Positions 33,843 through 43,900 are shown, numbered from the stretch's first letter. The stretch is DNA of 64,000 bases from Trichosphaerium sp. ATCC 40318 (GCA_038496445.1 JALMLS010000466.1:744001-808000); one strand, 5' to 3'. Notes: generated by a model not told the origin, from the sequence alone. Program-made: numbers and translations.

Positions 33843-34539
33843 TTAAATAGGTACAACACCATCTCTTGTTACAATAGCTCTTGATGCTCCTTCGGGCAAA
33901 TCACGTGTTATTACCAGTTCATTAGTACGGCAGTGCAACATTGCATAATATATAGGTGTCCTTCCCATTGATACCTTTTTAATAAGTTCTAGAGTACCCT
34001 TTTGATCAGTGCAATACATCTTATGAGAAGCTAGCAATGTGGGTGTTGTTTTACCGATTATAGCAGACTGACAACAGAACCTAGTCTTACCACCAGGGAA
34101 AACAAACATGAAATAAACCAAAAAAAGCTTAACCTTCGGAAACGTGTTGTGTAGCGTTGTCATCATATCTTTTGATAGCTTACAACAGATAGAGTCAAGC
34201 ATATCATGCGGTACAGAGCATACGAGCACTACTTGGTTTTCTGCAAGTGGATGTGCCATAAACGCGATACTATAGCGAATTGTAAGTGTTTACGTGTTAC
34301 TACGCCATGTACCGTTCTGGAACGAGGTCTGCGTCGGAGCTTGATAGCCTTTCTGGTTTTTCTGGTTTTTTTTTAAAGCAATTAGGCCTATGCTCTTTCC
34401 AATGTTTTCTTTGGCATACAGAGTTGCAATAACGAACGCTTTGGCATTTTGAGCATTTAAACAGCTTTTTCCCGGTTGCAGCATGCTCGCCGCACGCTCC
34501 ACACCTTGCACTAATACATATGACTTGTTTAGTCGTCAT
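33843..34539 (-). CDS. MYND zinc-finger protein (2 exons)
   Basis: CGAC...[26 protein letters not shown]; a phase-2 intron joins the two ORFs in frame. Confidence 0.85.
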
Positions 34540-35000
34540 TGCCAATAGTATTACGCGTACAACTTTAAGTCGTACTGCAATTCTATCTAAGCCAAAACCC
34601 GCAATTGAAAAAATTGTAATAACACATTCTCACTTGAGACAGCTTCAATTGCAAGAAATATGACATTTTTGATTATTGGTAAATATCCAGCACTTCTAGA
34701 GGCAGCATAATACGGAGGATATGTAAGGTGGTACATTTAAAAATCCCCTTAGCTATTGACTTCTTCATATACTTCATGTCGTCTCCTTGCGTTTCAGAAA
34801 CATCTCTACAATCTTTTGCACAAAACTGTTGATGCCTCCAAAGCGCTCTGACTCCCTCTATCTTCGCAAAGTCTACCATATAGGTTGCGAAACTTGTACT
34901 TGCTGCAACCTCCACTGGTGAGTTACGTGTTAAATGCAAAGGCATTCAAGCACTCTGAATTAAGAAAGGTGAGTTTATTCTGGACAACATATCAATTGCC

Positions 35001-35843
35001 TTAGTGTTCCTCAGGTAGACGCTCTAGAAGTATATTAAACTAGCCGCTACCATAAACTGTTTGGGTTTCAAAGAACATACCTCTTCCTTTACTAACAGGT
35101 ATGTGTATAGGAGTAAAATGAGGGAATGAACACCTCTCTAAAAACAATAGTTAGACAATTGATAAAAGATACGAATAGAGACCCTCATCGAGTACTGAGG
35201 TAGACCGGTGACTGTGCTCTATATAGCTACAAGACTATTTACGTACTTCCCCTGAGACATCGAGCTACAACGTTTTGTCTGCATTTTATACTATCGATTT
35301 CTCCCCTCCACAATCTACATGACAAGTGTATATCTTACAAAACACGTTAGACTACGAGAGTGTTAAATGTGTACCCTTGTAGCGAAGTCCACCTAATATA
35401 CCAACTAAACACTCAGCATCTCCTTCACTCTGACACAGGATATACAACGCTCCTCCCCTACTTAAATTATTATCAAACATGGTAGCAGAAATTTAAAATC
35501 ACGTGCGTACAATGCACCCATAGAAGTCAACACATGTATACTTGTCGCTTTATCTATGAAATCTGGCCATATTCTTTGCAACATTATTACATAAAAAGGA
35601 ATAGACAAAACCCTTTGAAGAGTCGGTTAAAAAATTCGGTTGGTTTTCAGTTGAAAAAAACGCACCCACAACGAGTTCCATATGGATCGCGCCTGTGATG
35701 ATATTAGTATTGTTACAAGCCAGTAACACTTACATTTCGATAATACACCAACGTGAAGATTCTGGACTCGTATGAGAACGCGTACATGCATCACCATGAA
35801 TGCACAAGCCTAATTTAGAGTAGAATGGACACTCCACAGCCAT
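35001..35843 (-). CDS. Divergent U2AF small subunit (U2AF35/ZRSR2)-like protein
   Basis: CPFYSKLGLCIHGDACTRSH (Cx8Cx5Cx3H), UHM-like LGGALYILCQSEGDAE, CRQNVVARCLRGKRCSFPH (Cx7Cx5Cx3H). Confidence 0.75.
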
Positions 35844-36130
35844 TGCAGTCGAAAAAGTCGTAGAAAACTCATTCTTTCTGTGTTAATTTGTTGCCTAGTA
35901 TAACCCGTAAGTCAAATTAGGTCTACGCAGTCGACATTAACTTTACTTATTTACAAACTAATACATGTCGCATGCGTTGACAGTGTAAGTCTGCAATGTT
36001 TGGATGAATTCTAGCCAACCACAACATTTTGACAAAGCTGCTCCTGGATTTTGCTAGGGTTGCATTTTATTGAAAACTCACAAGAGCCTTTTTTGGTTTA
36101 TTTTCTATTATACAATTTCCATATCCTTCG

Positions 36131-38390
36131 TCAGACTACTCCTGCAATATTGTTAGGACTGGTACAATATCTGTAACGAATACGCACTATGCTATCACGT
36201 GATTGAAATGCTACTACATCTTCATAGTAAACCAAGAATAATGGCAAAAGCTGAGACTCCTTGTGTGGTTTAACAAAAAAAGCAGTGACAAAACTGTAAA
36301 AACATACCTCTGCCAAAACTAGGTTATCATGATCTGGGTATGGACTATCTTCGTCTACTAGTGTGTTCTCAGTACGTCCATCCGTACCTATTCTTTGACG
36401 GAGAGGAAGGTGAAAACTATCATATTGTTTGTTATTAAACGAGAGCGTTGACGCATTTCCGGTGACCTGAAAGAACACAAAAACGTTAGGAGATTCAAAT
36501 ATTCCTCTGTTTGTCTTACTGATAAACAGTTGCAAGTAGAGGCAACACATAAAAGAACCACACCACCTCCTTGGGCAGCGGCCGTTTTAGCTTGTAAACA
36601 AGTATAGTATCCTTCGCCACAGAGATCTTTGAAGTAGATTAGAAAATACTGATAATAAATTGTTTGAAACAAATACCTGTTTTTGGAGACAAAAGGCCTT
36701 CGCCTGTACCGAGTGTACACCATGTAAAAAACGAGTTGATATCATCATACTTATAAATCACAAATGATTCAAGCCGTCCTCTAATCTCATCTTGGAACGA
36801 ATTACTGCTCATAGTTGGTGTCTGAATGACTTTAACTCTGTTTCGTGCATCTAAATAAATTATTACTGACGGAATGAAGTCATCTTGTGTACTCATAACA
36901 GCAATCTTGTACTCGAATGGTGTCTCCAGCATGTTTCTATTACGAATAGCTACTATACGTGTAGGTTTGAATTCTGTACAATCAAACATGTATTCAATAA
37001 TATGGTACAAATTAGATCTTGTGTTCAACACAAATTCTTCAGTTCCATCTTCCCCAGTGAAGAATTTTTTTTTGCCTAGATTACAAGGGTAAGCTTTTGC
37101 TACACAATTTATACTGTAGTACTTGGTGTATGCGATCCAAAGGGACTCCATTTTACTGTATTAAGAGAGACTGGTAAGTACCAAGGCCTTGTAGGATTAC
37201 CAAAGTTTATTCTTGATAAGTTCACTTTAATCTTTTTCGATCTCCTCTTCTGTATCGTATCGTATGTTACCATTCCCTGATCTGCAGTTATCAAATCCGA
37301 TTCCTCTGTAGTATCATATAAATCTACATATTCTCCATGAAAAATGCACCATTCTTTACGCGCTGCAATTCGAATAAGTTGGAGAAAACCAAAACAACTT
37401 TTGTCGGCGTACCAACAAAGAGCATAAGGTAGATTGGTATTGTTGTTTGTAGCCAGTAAAAAATATTCGAGTTTCCAAGACCTAATACCCCCAAGTCACC
37501 AAAGGTTTCTGCAATACCAATAAAGACTCTGAAAATAATACAACAAATGATACAACCCATCAATATTAAAAACTTTAAAAAACATTAATAAAAAAACGAA
37601 GAGCCATTATATTCAGTCGTACGCGCTTTTGGTACTTTGCTAGGTTGTATAAGACCATACCCGACATTGTTGTCATTATAATAACATATATAAAGTAGTA
37701 TATGGCAAATACTAAAGCAGCTCTTCGAACATTTGTATCTTCAGTAGATATGATAATAATAGTAAAAGCAAAAGCTAGCTCAGCTATTACAGCGAATAAT
37801 GACATCCAAAAAAATAACCTCCAAAAACCTGCCTTTTCTAGTACGTATGCCCTATAAACAGACAAGATTAGAAAACAGAAAAAAAACACGTGACGTTTTC
37901 AATTTGGACCAAAAAAGGGTTATTACAAAATTGTTGATTTGTACCACAACACGAGCAATTCAAGGGATATCAAGTACGCCAAAAGTCCAGGTACAGAATA
38001 AAAAGCAACGTGTAGGTTGGTTTCATCCGTTTTGAAAGGTTCAATAGCTATAGCAACTCCTGTATCTGTAGGTATAAAATTGGAAAAAAATCTACTGATA
38101 TTTCCTTTTGGTTTTTTTTTTGGGCTTACACAGAGCGTAAACTACATGACTGCAGAAAAAAATGAGCTCCAGTCGTCTTCGTTTAAAACTTGTAGATTCT
38201 AAGGCAGGTGGGTTTTTCGCTTGAAATGTCGTTGATACGTACTGTATAACAGATAAACGAATGCTAACGCTGTAATGAAATGAATTACGTATGCGGCAAC
38301 CAATAACCAATCATTGATGTCATTAATTGTATCAAAACCTGTACGTGTGCTATTAGTGACATTTTGCCACGAATGGTTTGTTCCAATCAT
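36131..38390 (-). CDS. 7TM membrane protein fused to a PARP-like ADP-ribosyltransferase domain
   Basis: Seven hydrophobic segments, then IVAIRN, GEGYY, VLLCVA, QYDS and ESQLLPLFLVYY; continuous frame using GT-AG introns. Confidence 0.7.
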
Positions 38391-38516
38391 TGATTGTGTA
38401 TTTAATGCAAATTGTGACAGTCAAATTTCGTCTTTGTAAGTGCTGTTTTACTACACCACCACAAGCGCACCAAGGTATATCTGTCTAATACATTTACGAA
38501 GGACTTGTTTTATAAA

Positions 38517-40595
38517 ATGTCGTACGACTCGAAAAGAAAGAGCGAATACGATGATGAAGACAGGAAGTCTAAGCGCCACAAACGCGAAGGTACGGCTAAT
38601 TTACACCTGTGAACAAAATCTTTGGCAATGCTTTTGCTTTGATTTTATAACATCCTGTACAGAGAAGAAGGACGGAAAGTTCACTTGGAGCCTTCGTAGA
38701 GAAAAACTAAAAGCAGAAGGCAAAGATCCAGATGCAAACGCCAAAATGCGTGAAGAAGAGCGTAAACAAGAAATTGAACTGCAAATTGAGCGTATGACAG
38801 AAATGCAAAAGCAAAGAGACCAAAGAAGACAAGACAGGTACGACATTGAACCGTATGAGGCCAGACAAGCATTAAATAACCTATTTTAAGTTTAAACAAC
38901 AGTTTTTTGTAACTGTGACTTTTAAAGCAAACAGAAACATTTATTCAGCCTTCTTACGCGGTTTTAGAGAGGTACCAAGCGATTTTAACCAAGAAGAGTA
39001 CGATGAAGAGATGAGAAGAGAAGAAATGTTTCAGTTCAACCAATCAAAAGCAAGAGCACAGATTAGGGTCCAAGGAAACCGCGCACATGCTATAGATCAG
39101 CTATACGCAAATGTAGCACTACCAGAGTTCCATGCAGTTGTCCCTGAGATTGTTCTTCAACATTTGAACTTACCTCAATTGAAAGACACTGAAAACGATC
39201 GTATGATATACTCTGCAAGAGATGAAGATAATACTGTATACTGGGACTCTGTAGGAGAGTTATTAAACTACGCTATAAAGAAAAAAGAAAAAGAAGCTGA
39301 AAGAACGTCCTCAAGGTGGAGTGAATCGAATGCAGTTCATAAAGGAGTATCTGCGGACGTTGAAAAAATATTTGTGGTACGTATACGCAACGCTAAAGCT
39401 CAATCAAACCGTTTTAACGAAGATTTTATTATTTTATTTTTTTGTAAAGTCGTGTTGTTCGTGCTGAATGTACCAATTCTGGTTTATTCTTTGAGCCTAC
39501 AACGATTTAAGATGAAGAAATCATTTACTCACCGTTTTCGCTTAGGGTAAGACAATAGACGAGCTAAATAAGCTTGAAAAGCAAATATCATCAAAGATAG
39601 ACAGTGGACAAGCTCTTGATGAAGAATATTGGGAGTCTATGCTCGAGACGTTGAAGATTTTCAGGGCTAGATGTATTTGTAAGCAAGAAATAGATCGTGT
39701 TAATCCTACAGCAAAGTTTGCAAAGGCTTGGCGTGGAGGTAAAGCCATTATACAAAGAGTAGTCCCAAAGCCAAAACCACAAGTGGAATCTCTTGCAAAG
39801 GCTAAATTACGGCGTATTCAGGCTGCCAGAATGTCAGGTATGTCTCTAGCGTTGATTTAAAGGACATTTGAGCAAAAAAATTACCTTTTTTTACATTCCA
39901 GCTACGCGTTTGAACACTACGTGTCTGTTCTTAAAATGCATGTTCTGTTTCTAAATGTTGTTTAGGACGACGTGTACTTAATGATAGAGCCGCTTATAAG
40001 GTTGAAAGGCAAAAAGGACTTACTGAGAAGGAGGAAGAATTCAATGTAGCTTTTCCAATTGAGCGTGAGTATAAATGGACAGAACGGATGCCAGACGTAC
40101 AACCACGTATGCCTCTATTCTACAATAGGGTTATTGAAGAGATTGAATGGAATAAATACAATATAACACATTACGATGATGATAATCCTCCACCAAAAAC
40201 TCCTCAAGTAAGACGACAGCTGAGATTGTAGTGGTGTTTACTTAACTTTTTTTTTAAAGGGTTACAAGTTCACTTTGTTTTATGGTGAGATGATTCCTCT
40301 TCCTGGTGAAACTGGAACTCATACGCCTAAGTGGAGGAAACATCGTATTGATGATGATCCTAATCATATTTTGATTGAGTTTGTTGCTGGTCCACCGTAT
40401 AAGAATATCGCGTTTAAAATAGAGAACAAGCCATGGTACGTTTTTTTTGAGTGATTTTTTTTTTGTGAATTTTGTTGCTTACTGAAATTGTGCAGGGAGA
40501 TGGTTGGACGTAATAGAAATAATTTTAAGAATTGCTTTCAAAATGGAGTGTTGAGCCTTTGGTTTGAATTTAAGAGATTTAAATACAGACGTTAA
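38517..40595 (+). CDS. CACTIN: Cactin (spliceosome C-complex factor)
   Basis: FQFNQSKARAQIRVQGNRAHAIDQL, EWNKYNITHYDDDNPPPKTPQGYKF, AGPPYKNIAFKI; ends FKRFKYRR*. Confidence 0.95.
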
Positions 40596-40927: not shown

Positions 40928-43900
40928 CTACACAGCAGTCTCATCTGTTTCTTCTACATTCTCGTCACCTTCTGGAGCATCTTCAGTAGAATCCATTACT
41001 AGATCTATGTCACCGGATTCAGACTCTACATTTTCTTCAGGTGTTTCTACTGATTCTGCAGGTGTGTCCTCTACTTCAGGTTCTTCATCTGCATTCTCTT
41101 CTACTGGGGACTCTGGCTCATCTTGGGTATCCTCAGATTCCTCTGGCGCATCTTTTGGTGTCTCGGTGGCGTCAGCGTCTGCAACAACTTCTTCTTGTGG
41201 TTGTTCTGTTGTCTCTTCTACTTCAGGAGCAGATTCGTCTTCTACAGGAGCTTCAGGTTCAACTGCTGGAGTGTCTTCAGTTTCGTCCTCAACAGCTGGT
41301 GTCTCCTCATCTTGGGTATCCTCAGTTTCCTCAGTCGCGACTTCAGTTGTATCTTCTTCGGCTGGAGCAGCTTCAGTTTCTTCACTTGCTTCAGGTTCTT
41401 CAGCAGCTGGAGCATCATCAGTCTTGTCCTCAACTGGGGACTCAGGCTCTTCAACAGCTGGAGCGTCTACAGTCTCGTCCTCAACAGCTGGGGTATCCTC
41501 GGTTGTTTCAGTTTCCTCAGCAACATCTTCAGTTGTATCTTCAGCTGTTTCTTCAGCTACTTCAGGCTCAGCTTCATCAGTTGTTTCTGGTTCTTCTACA
41601 ACATCATTTGTCTCAGGTTCAGCAACTGGCTCAGCAACTTCTGGTTCTTCTGTCTCGACTTCAGGTTGAGGTTCATCCTCAACTGGATCTTCACTTGCAG
41701 GCGCAGCTACATCCTCAACAGGAGCCTCTGGTTCGTCTTCAACAGGAGCTTCTGGTTCTTCAGTGGTTTCCTCAGCAGGAGTTTCTGTTTCTTCAGCTAC
41801 TTCAGGCTCAGCTTCTTCAACAGGATCCTCAGATTCTTCTACAGCTGGAACATCTTCAGTTGTGTCCTCAGCGTCTTCAGTATTTTCAGGTTCTTCGACT
41901 GGAGATGTCTCCACTGGCTCTTCAGTTTCGGCATCAGCAATAGGTTCTTCTGCAGTTTGCTCGACATCTTCGGTAGGAGTTGACTCAACATCTTCTAGTG
42001 GAGATTCGGCTGTATTGTCTTGGGTTTCTTCTGGTTGCTCTGGTGCTTCTTCTGGTGTCTCTTCAGCAACAACTTCTTGTGGCTCTTCAACTGGCTCCGG
42101 TTCAGGTTCAGCTACGGCCTCAACAGGTGCTTCAGGTTCTTCTGCTGGTTCAGGCTCAGATACGTCTTCAACTGGAGCTTCAGGCTCAGCTACATCCTCA
42201 ACAGGTGCTTCAGGTTCTTGAGCTGGCTCCGGTTCAGGTTCAGCTACGGCCTCAACAGGTGCTTCAGGTTCTTCTGCTGGTTCTGGTTCAGGTTCAGATA
42301 CATCTTCAACTGGCTCAGCTTCTGGCTCAGATACGTCTTCAACAGGTGCTTCAGGTTCTTCAGCTTGCTCCGGTTCCGGTTCAGGTTCAGCTACGTCCTC
42401 AACAGGTGCTTCAGGTTCTTCTGCTGGTTCAGGCACAGATACGTCTTCAGCAGGAGTTTCTGGCTCAGCTTCGTCTTCAACAACAGGTTCTTGTGCTTCT
42501 TCTGCTTTTGGTTGTTCTGCTTCTTCTTGTTTATCTTCAACGGCATCTTCGCTGGCAACTACATTATCTTCAGTTTCTTCTGGCATGTCATTAGCCTCTT
42601 TAGCATCATCGACTGCAGCGTCAATAATATCCAGAGCGTCTTCTACTACTTCTTCAGCAGCAGCAACTGTATCATCAACAATATCTTCTGCTTTTTCAAC
42701 TAAGTCTTGAGCAATTGTTGCTTCTTGTGGTTCCTCTTTTTCTTCTTCTTTGTTTTCTTCTTTTTCATCAGTTTCAGCTTTTTCTACGGCTACAGGTTCT
42801 TCTTCACCTTCACTTTCTTTGGCAGCATCTTTTTCTTCATTATCGGAACCATCTTCGGATTTCTTCTCTGGTTCTTCAGCAGACTTTTTGTCTTCTTCTG
42901 TTTCTTTCTTGTCAGCTTCTGGTTGATCGATAGAAGCCTTAGGTAGAACAGGGTATAAGTTTTCAGTTCCAGGACCAACACTATGAGAGGGTACCTCAAC
43001 TTCAGGAGCAGGCTAAACTTTGGTGTTAAAAGTACAATCAACAAAATCAATATTATTTACCTGCAATAATGGAGCGTTCTTGTGGCTGTTTAGTCTCCAA
43101 TCATAAGAGTGAAATACAACTTTAACTCTCACAGGGTCAAAAGAATCACCCTCCCAGTATTGTGCAATGAATTTGCGAACACCTCCTTTGGCCTGAACGA
43201 CAAGAAATAAGAACAAAGAACAAAACGAAGAAAAAAGGTGGTTGAACTGATCTTTTTTTTTTTACGTACCCTGAATACATCAGAAAACCGTTTAAAGAAT
43301 GTACAGACATGCAACCTACCGTCTTCAAGACGAACTGCTGAGCTGTTGATGAAACGCTTTGTAGCTGCTTCCATGTCGGCTTCGATAGTTTCCTAAGCGT
43401 AATCAGACGGTTTTAGTGACAGATTTGTGGCTGTTATTTGCTTACAGCGTCGTATGGTTCTTTTTTGAGTCTACAAAATGGATTAGCGATTAGTTAACGT
43501 TTTGTGGTCGTACCTTGGGCATGACAGCACTGCGCTGTTAATGCAAAAATATACTCTCGGTTCACGCATATTTTTTAGGACTTTAGATAGAAACATCTTT
43601 ATTGTTACGCTAACGCCTGCAATAGTGTATCGCCTAGCAAATGTCACAAAATAGGAAAGTTTTTTTATGCTTTGTACCTCCGCGCAAAGCTCCAACGTCT
43701 TAATATTGATGTATGACCAGGATAGTTAGGCTCAGACGTCAATTTTAAAGTGACGCCGTGGATTACGACATAGTTGTACGCGTTGATATAAAACGCCAGC
43801 ATATCTTGTGTTGTAAAGTCGCTGATATCCTGGAGAGCAAAGAAGTCAATATTTCTTGCCAATCCTTCAGGCTCCTTCAAAATCGCGCTAAACACATTTA

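Follow-up and report, generated by a model that had tools for sequence, protein, structure and literature searches.

Between positions 38390 and about 36104 of a 64,000-nucleotide stretch of Trichosphaerium sp. ATCC 40318 (GCA_038496445.1 JALMLS010000466.1:744001-808000; the whole stretch is called the window), the minus strand carries a real, spliced eukaryotic gene with short GT-AG introns, in which a single reading frame probably joins a multi-pass N-terminal membrane part to a soluble domain at the C-terminus. The end of the soluble tail is tentatively read as a strongly diverged, catalytically dead domain derived from the poly(ADP-ribose) polymerases (PARPs) and tethered to the membrane. 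Its PARP-like fold is a lead that is still unproven, and the odds of an unrelated orphan domain are only slightly lower. A preliminary description had proposed a seven-transmembrane (7TM) receptor fused to a PARP-like ADP-ribosyltransferase (ART) domain, signaling by mono-ADP-ribosylation or through an NAD-binding pseudo-ART.

From the sequence alone, the open frame that starts with the ATG at 38390 can be followed on the minus strand through nine exons to a stop at 36131, which confirms the single frame through GT-AG introns that had been described, and every peptide string quoted in that description is present. The single public run containing the stretch behaves as a transcriptome and includes a 973-letter RNA-type contig, which aligns to 37363-36104 with six CT..AC joints (GT..AG on the minus strand); the 3′ half of the gene is expressed and spliced. 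Four predicted introns (37122-37076, 36676-36627, 36519-36467, and 36307-36260) are supported by this contig. Two more, absent from the quoted peptides, are added by it: 36892-36851 (42 nt), which is in frame, removes 15 residues (STQDDFIPSVIIYLD) and creates one Asn codon, and 36187-36142 (46 nt), the removal of which results in the protein end ...AFQSRDSIE and moves the stop from 36131 to a TAG at 36136-36138. The RNA-informed model comprises 11 exons, 1,617 nt, and 538 codons. Two of the RNA-confirmed introns (36260-36307, 48 nt, and the 42-nt intron 36851-36892) are stop-free multiples of three, so that their retention keeps the frame; the residues encoded by the latter (VIIYL) were modeled as a strand by AlphaFold2. 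Contig and genome differ at seven positions, all of them synonymous third positions in exon 6a and none nonsynonymous, which indicates that the coding sequence is under purifying selection, between alleles or near-identical copies. Confinement of the seven differences to one 182-nt exon piece (36893-37074), with none elsewhere on the contig, suggests that the assembly of the run combines two alleles, or near-identical paralogs, in a mosaic. G+C content (∼37% in the region) and intron sizes match those published for the genome (37.7% G+C, mean intron 75 bp; PMC10521059).

Membrane exons and tail very probably constitute a single gene, and would be fused into one transcript by the joining of exons 4 and 5. 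Exon 4 ends with ...GTT G in front of the donor gtacgc, and an acceptor at 37362, 50 nt downstream (...ttgcag in front of CGCG), joins to it in frame. The 5′ end of the RNA contig, at 37363, corresponds to this acceptor plus one G, the same base as the last of exon 4; contigs of a de Bruijn assembly stop at such a point when spliced and unspliced RNA part ways, which would account for this start. Because 37354-37362 are present in the contig, 37362 is probably the acceptor that is used, and the junction probably reads LMLFV-ARKE-WCIFHG instead of the LMLFV-EWCIFHG originally given. Whether two neighboring genes have been wrongly joined, i.e., a six-helix membrane protein that ends at a read-through stop (37324) and a separate soluble protein that begins in exon 5, has to be considered here. 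RNA is confined to 37363 and downstream, with no coverage of 37364-38507, and thus of the membrane exons, in the only run available; exon 4, when read through its donor, encounters a stop after 30 further codons; and the first in-frame Met of exon 5 is located 27 codons in. However, the contig begins exactly at the cag acceptor, ∼90 nt upstream of this Met, the gap of only 50 nt between the two parts leaves no room for a separate promoter, and the donor of exon 4 and the acceptor join in frame, which makes two separate genes unlikely. As to the single transcript that characterizes fusions of a G protein-coupled receptor (GPCR) to an enzyme (GPCR-bigrams), what was found is the in-frame junction and the contig starting at the acceptor, and no read across 37413/37362.

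In the membrane part, a 19-residue hydropathy window, applied exon by exon, revealed five strong hydrophobic helices and a weaker one, hence six and not the seven claimed before. A seventh is conceivable only with a candidate 20-nt mini-exon (38149-38130). The first intron of the model is 177 nt long versus 42-75 nt for all others; together with the donor at 38238, the mini-exon keeps the frame and divides this intron into pieces of 89 and 64 nt, which would bring the model to 12 exons and 546 codons. It would add HVVYAL beside TGVAIAI, a segment with a hydropathy of only about 0.8 (calculated by hand), and might create a short seventh span that would place the N-terminus outside. Three N-x-S/T sequons (NHS, NVT, and NST) within the first 15 residues bear out the N-terminus rich in N-glycosylation sites that had been described. 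Positive charge sits in the loops KSTILAYVLEKAGFWR and NLAKYQKR and in ARK after the last helix, which, according to the positive-inside rule, predicts that the tail of roughly 310 residues is cytosolic. With six helices, the N-terminus would be cytosolic, too, and the three sequons would therefore be unused. All database searches were conducted exon by exon. None of the membrane exons matched a GPCR family in Pfam or NCBIfam; the sole Pfam hint among them was DUF7027 in exon 3 (E 0.003; 17.8 bits, below the cutoff of 27), and a word-indexed homolog search with exon 3 yielded no match. With six clear helices, no GPCR family match, and no sign of ligand sensing, the designation as a 7TM receptor could not be upheld.

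Comparator PARP genes were fished by means of degenerate DNA patterns matching the G-K-G-x-Y-F-A signature and validated with Pfam PF00644 (44-210 bits); fished loci with very short open reading frames (ORFs) around the motif, which may be intron-split animal genes, were left out of the profiles, as was L063, a contig from a human-gut metagenome. None of the contigs was recognized as human. The PARP1-type profile contained 54 sequences (53 Armatimonadota and metagenome ORFs and the viral PARP P0004) and the mono-ART-type profile 19 (18 small giant-virus-type proteins and, again, P0004). Searches seeded with P0004 returned only P0004 itself, and tblastn of P0004 against phage records gave no match. 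Among the fished genes, those from IMG/VR contigs (L181-L204, several labeled GVMAG) encode stand-alone PARP catalytic-domain proteins of about 174-235 aa, with 44-77 bits on PF00644 and intact LFHGT and YGKG[TS]YFA. Sixteen Armatimonadota/Chthonomonadaceae/Capsulimonadaceae genomes (L027-L042) carry PARP1-like genes; the one tested, L027, scored 139 bits on PF00644, and the others share its signature (LFHGT…MFGKGIYFADQSSKSAQY) and a short C-terminal tail.

Local-alignment tests are blind to motif-level similarity in pieces of 24-60 residues, and searches with single exons have low power. Each exon was also scored ungapped against each of seven conserved blocks of the two profiles, with 20,000 shuffles as the background. 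Of the seven PARP-core blocks, four or five were placed on the segments singled out in the preliminary description (P 0.006-0.16), and the placements were collinear within and between exons. For the block consisting of GxGxYFA and the following helix, CGEGYYTCLQAKTAAAQ was the best placement in both profiles (P 0.009 for mono-ART, 0.006 for PARP1), albeit ranking only 6/171 and 60/187 among the profile windows. The YDS block was placed on QYDSFH in the PARP1-type profile (P 0.023, rank 2/198), the β5 block on HDNLVLAE (P 0.08, same profile), which has Asn at the Glu position, and the last-strand block on LPLFLVYYE / SQLLPLFLVYYED (P 0.03 and rank 2/179 for mono-ART; P 0.16 for PARP1). The relaxed motif pair of exon 7 was found in order in 0.065% of shuffles, and the relaxed C-terminal motif in 0.024% of shuffles and once in the 47,195 ORF residues of the window, both motifs having been relaxed after the sequence was seen; the strict forms LLCxV, QxxPxYLIxY, and HG, which had been listed in the preliminary description as part of the PARP/ARTD strand order, are absent. 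The spacing N-x7-Q-x2-P-x-F-L-V-x-Y equals what we take to be the spacing from the Glu position to the end of the hairpin in human PARP15. The mono-ART alignment lacks this Gln, and its strand-to-Pro spacing is one residue off.

Only two contiguous pieces of the tail were folded, namely exon 6 together with the in-frame intron inside it, and exons 8-9. The AlphaFold2 model of exon 6, calculated without a multiple sequence alignment, reached a mean predicted local distance difference test (pLDDT) score of 62 and a predicted template modeling score of 0.53, with a pLDDT of 63-74 for the elements of exon 6b. These follow each other as strand RVKVIQ, helix NSFQDEIRGRL, strand FVIYKY, and helix INSFFTWCTL, which is the β1-α1-β2-α2 order of the PARP core, at near-family spacing to the GxG block (mono-ART alignment). 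Mapped onto the PARP core in this way, exon 6 has a Tyr at the His position. The exon 8-9 piece (pLDDT 50) was too poor to be used, and the exon 6 model gave no ART fold match.

A number of results weigh against a PARP-derived tail, as does the lack of RNA over the membrane exons against its fusion to them. Pfam, NCBIfam, and PADLOC gave no significant match for any tail exon, PF00644 gave none at E up to 10, and PDB sequences none for exons 6, 6a, and 7. In unfiltered hmmsearch and hhalign runs, each exon scored at the level of shuffled exons against both PARP profiles (bit scores from −0.9 to −2.7, or 0.9 for a misplaced match; zero or below against the profile of the small viral PARPs), and masking the fished motif columns left the negative hmmsearch result unchanged. 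BLASTP of the exons against P0004 yielded no match. As even viral PARPs of 174 aa reach 44-77 bits on PF00644, the tail domain would have to be far more diverged than those. In the block test, three of the seven blocks stayed at chance level: LLCxV (GGVVLLCVASTC, the segment put forward for it; P 0.24-0.39), the N-terminal IxxIxN block (P 0.2-0.7), and the His-Gly block (best placement VIYKYD; P 0.54 and 0.91), and no HG is present in exons 6b-9. The mono-ART profile chose a different segment for the YDS block, so that QYDSFH was not replicated. Moreover, because the block tests reuse the motifs for which the region was chosen, their P-values are inflated by selection, and constitute a measured lead instead of an independent test. 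Of the PARP-like domain originally proposed, the ordered segments on the GxGxYFA, YDS, β5, and C-terminal-strand blocks stand as a lead, whereas neither a significant exon match nor an ART fold match was obtained.

Two PDB matches were discarded. That of exon 6b was to a TIR and was taken as chance. Exons 8 and 9, read through the intervening intron, matched rat ecto-ART2.2 (E 0.5-1.4), the only ART match in PDB, which arises from the 48-nt in-frame intron 36260-36307; the alignment crosses 16 intron-coded residues that are removed from the RNA, and is considered chance or an artifact. A sequence match to the ARTC (R-S-E) ecto-ADP-ribosyltransferases that includes the [QE]xE strand was not obtained, and neither was a match to the Pfam ART or ADPrib_exo_Tox families. 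Two Atlas feature searches yielded no usable match, and tblastn of the exons against the window revealed no paralogs inside it. At the level of single exons, no homolog of the tail was detected.

The same single gene could encode an unrelated, lineage-specific (ORFan) α/β domain, a membrane-tethered interaction module whose PARP-like motifs are a chance resemblance picked out by eye, and this is a serious possibility. When 1.84 billion representatives were searched exhaustively with exon 6, the largest tail exon, only three matches came up, all of them spurious (tandem-repeat ORFs or fibronectin-type proteins, aligned across intron-coded residues); profile, PDB, Atlas, and fold searches with the pieces were all negative; three of seven PARP blocks are at chance and the strict motif forms absent; and 7,489 of 27,369 genes in the genome are ORFans (PMC10521059). 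On the other hand, the blocks that do match are collinear in both of the independent PARP profiles, the C-terminal hairpin block has a spacing near that of the family, and searches by exon are weak against similarity at the motif level. A PARP-derived domain is still preferred, if without much confidence.

Glu-less PARPs such as the H-Y-I/L enzymes are active as mono-transferases, and the tail has kept the Tyr that stacks on nicotinamide in the GxGxY block; to our knowledge, however, active PARP-family (ARTD) transferases retain the His of His-Gly, which is found at no plausible position here (the block P-values being those given above). Because His-Gly is missing and an Asn occupies the Glu position, signaling by mono-ADP-ribosylation, one of the two outputs initially envisaged, is unlikely. 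A one-component 7TM receptor with an active, ligand-switched mono-ADP-ribosyltransferase tail, for which GPCR-enzyme fusions known in protists (PMC6033456) might serve as precedent, would in addition have to be reconciled with only six clear helices and no match to a GPCR family, and is very improbable indeed. Hardly more probable is a true seven-helix receptor (mini-exon included, N-terminus outside and glycosylated) fused to a PARP-fold domain that binds NAD+ or ADP-ribose. The pseudo-ART, the other output envisaged, is a plausible candidate only. That the His and Glu positions are replaced holds insofar as His-Gly is absent and Asn is found for Glu, but the residue at the His position is read as Tyr or Trp and not, as before, as Cys. 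The proposed catalytic positions are devoid of catalytic residues.

Coordinates of the gene features (positions in the window; 538-codon model plus the candidate mini-exon)
Feature	Position	Strand	Content	Support
Exon 1	38243..38390	−	Start codon 38388-38390; three N-x-S/T sequons; first hydrophobic helix LLVAAYVIHFITALAFVYL	Open frame; GT donor gtacgt; hydropathy 2.27; no RNA coverage
Candidate 20-nt mini-exon	38130..38149	−	Alternative 5′ model with donor 38238	Pyrimidine tract, cag acceptor, gtaagc donor; frame kept
Exon 2	37927..38065	−	Second helix FYSVPGLLAYLISLELLVL	Frame and hydropathy; no RNA coverage
Exon 3	37623..37851	−	Third and fourth helices	Frame and hydropathy
Exon 4	37413..37572	−	Fifth helix and weaker sixth IFYWLQTTIPIYLMLFV	Final G before gtacgc
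Exon 5	37123..37362	−	Soluble tail begins (ARKEWCIFHG..., acidic then basic linker)	RNA contig 37122-37363; alternative acceptor 37353
Exon 6a	36893..37075	−	Contains RIVAIRNRNMLETPFEYKIAVM	RNA joints 37122/37074 and 36893/36850
Exon 6b	36677..36850	−	RVKVIQ..NSFQDEIRGRL..FVIYKY..INSFFTWCTLG; candidate β1-α1-β2-α2 of ART core without His-Gly	RNA joints
Exon 7	36520..36626	−	LCGEGYYTCLQAKTAAAQGGGVVLLCVASTCNCLS; candidate GxGxY[FY] strand, helix, hhhCxV strand	RNA joints
Exon 8	36308..36466	−	QYDSFH…HDNLVLAE; candidate YDS strand and β5, Asn at Glu position	RNA joints
Exon 9	36188..36259	−	ESQLLPLFLVYYEDVVAFQSRDSI; candidate last strand Q-x2-P-x-[YF]-h-h-x-[YF]	RNA joints 36307/36258 and 36187/36140
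Exon 10	36104..36141	−	Last codon GAG; TAG 36136-36138; start of 3′ untranslated region	RNA contig ends near 36104

In the vicinity of the gene, a divergently transcribed neighbor (38512-38782, plus strand) begins only some 120 nt away from the start codon at 38390; an RNA contig there has a 73-nt GT..AG intron (38588-38660), and the ORFs downstream are rich in Lys, Glu, and Arg (…KLKAEGKDPDANAKMREEERKQEIELQIERMTEMQKQRDQRRQDRYD…). On the minus strand, an ORF at 34300-34545 shows a MYND-type zinc-finger pattern, and a short ORF at 35730-35843 a CCCH-like pattern (MAVECPFYSKLGLCIHGDACTRSH). An RNA contig over the latter (35733-35870) has long loose ends on both sides, which marks it as an exon of a spliced gene. 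A further minus-strand ORF (40928-42586, 552 aa) consists of acidic Pro/Glu-rich repeats (…EPEAPVEDVAEPEPEP…), and the opposite strand of this repeat bears long Ser-rich ORFs.

If the tail is indeed PARP-derived, the spliced gene would give rise to a lineage-restricted polytopic membrane protein with a six-helix anchor and a cytosolic tail, the last roughly 190 residues of which (exons 6b-9) would adopt a diverged ART fold without catalysis. His-Gly would be replaced by Tyr or Trp at the His position, the nicotinamide-stacking Tyr would be kept in GEGYYTC, and Asn would stand for the catalytic Glu. Such a domain may act like those of PARP13/ZAP or TASOR, i.e., as a nonenzymatic binding or scaffold module at the membrane, with no ADP-ribosylating output. 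These pseudo-PARPs (PMC7532188) are ART-fold modules that lack the H-Y-E triad and bind in place of catalyzing, as the proposed domain would, and in the ZAP alignment, too, a Tyr occupies the His position. However, their domains can be recognized from sequence or structure, and the proteins are soluble, nuclear or cytosolic, whereas the tail described here, placed behind six membrane helices, escapes detection when searched exon by exon. PARP16/ARTD15, a tail-anchored PARP of the endoplasmic reticulum membrane (PMC3372510), shares with the proposed protein a PARP-type domain on the cytosolic face of a membrane, but there a single C-terminal anchor helix follows an active domain of the H-Y-Y/I type, whereas here a polytopic N-terminal anchor would precede a domain without His-Gly. 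The small PARPs on giant-virus contigs (L181-L204) and P0004 have the mono-ART pattern LFHGT, YGKGTYFA, FMFLCxVLxG, YDSAVDN, and P.Y[LIV][LIV].F, which the tail resembles in part, despite the difference in profile scores mentioned above. GPCR-bigrams of oomycetes and other protists (PMC6033456, PMC5784254) also combine an N-terminal multi-pass part with a predicted cytosolic, globular C-terminal domain; their partners are PIPK, INPP, AC, PDE, TKL, and an N-terminal aspartic protease, with no ADP-ribosyltransferase listed (PMC6033456), and the membrane part described here differs from theirs in having no GPCR homology and six clear helices. The literature search found no example of a 7TM-PARP fusion, in line with what had been stated before.

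Without a PARP origin of the tail, the gene counts among the thousands of orphan genes in the genome and is of local interest only. The improbable seven-helix reading, if true, would establish a new class of one-component GPCR-bigram, which converts an extracellular signal into NAD+/ADP-ribose signaling. If, as tentatively favored, the tail is a dead descendant of the PARPs, we found no earlier description of a PARP-like protein with a polytopic membrane part, the known cases being either anchored by one helix at the tail (PARP16) or pseudo-PARPs that are soluble.
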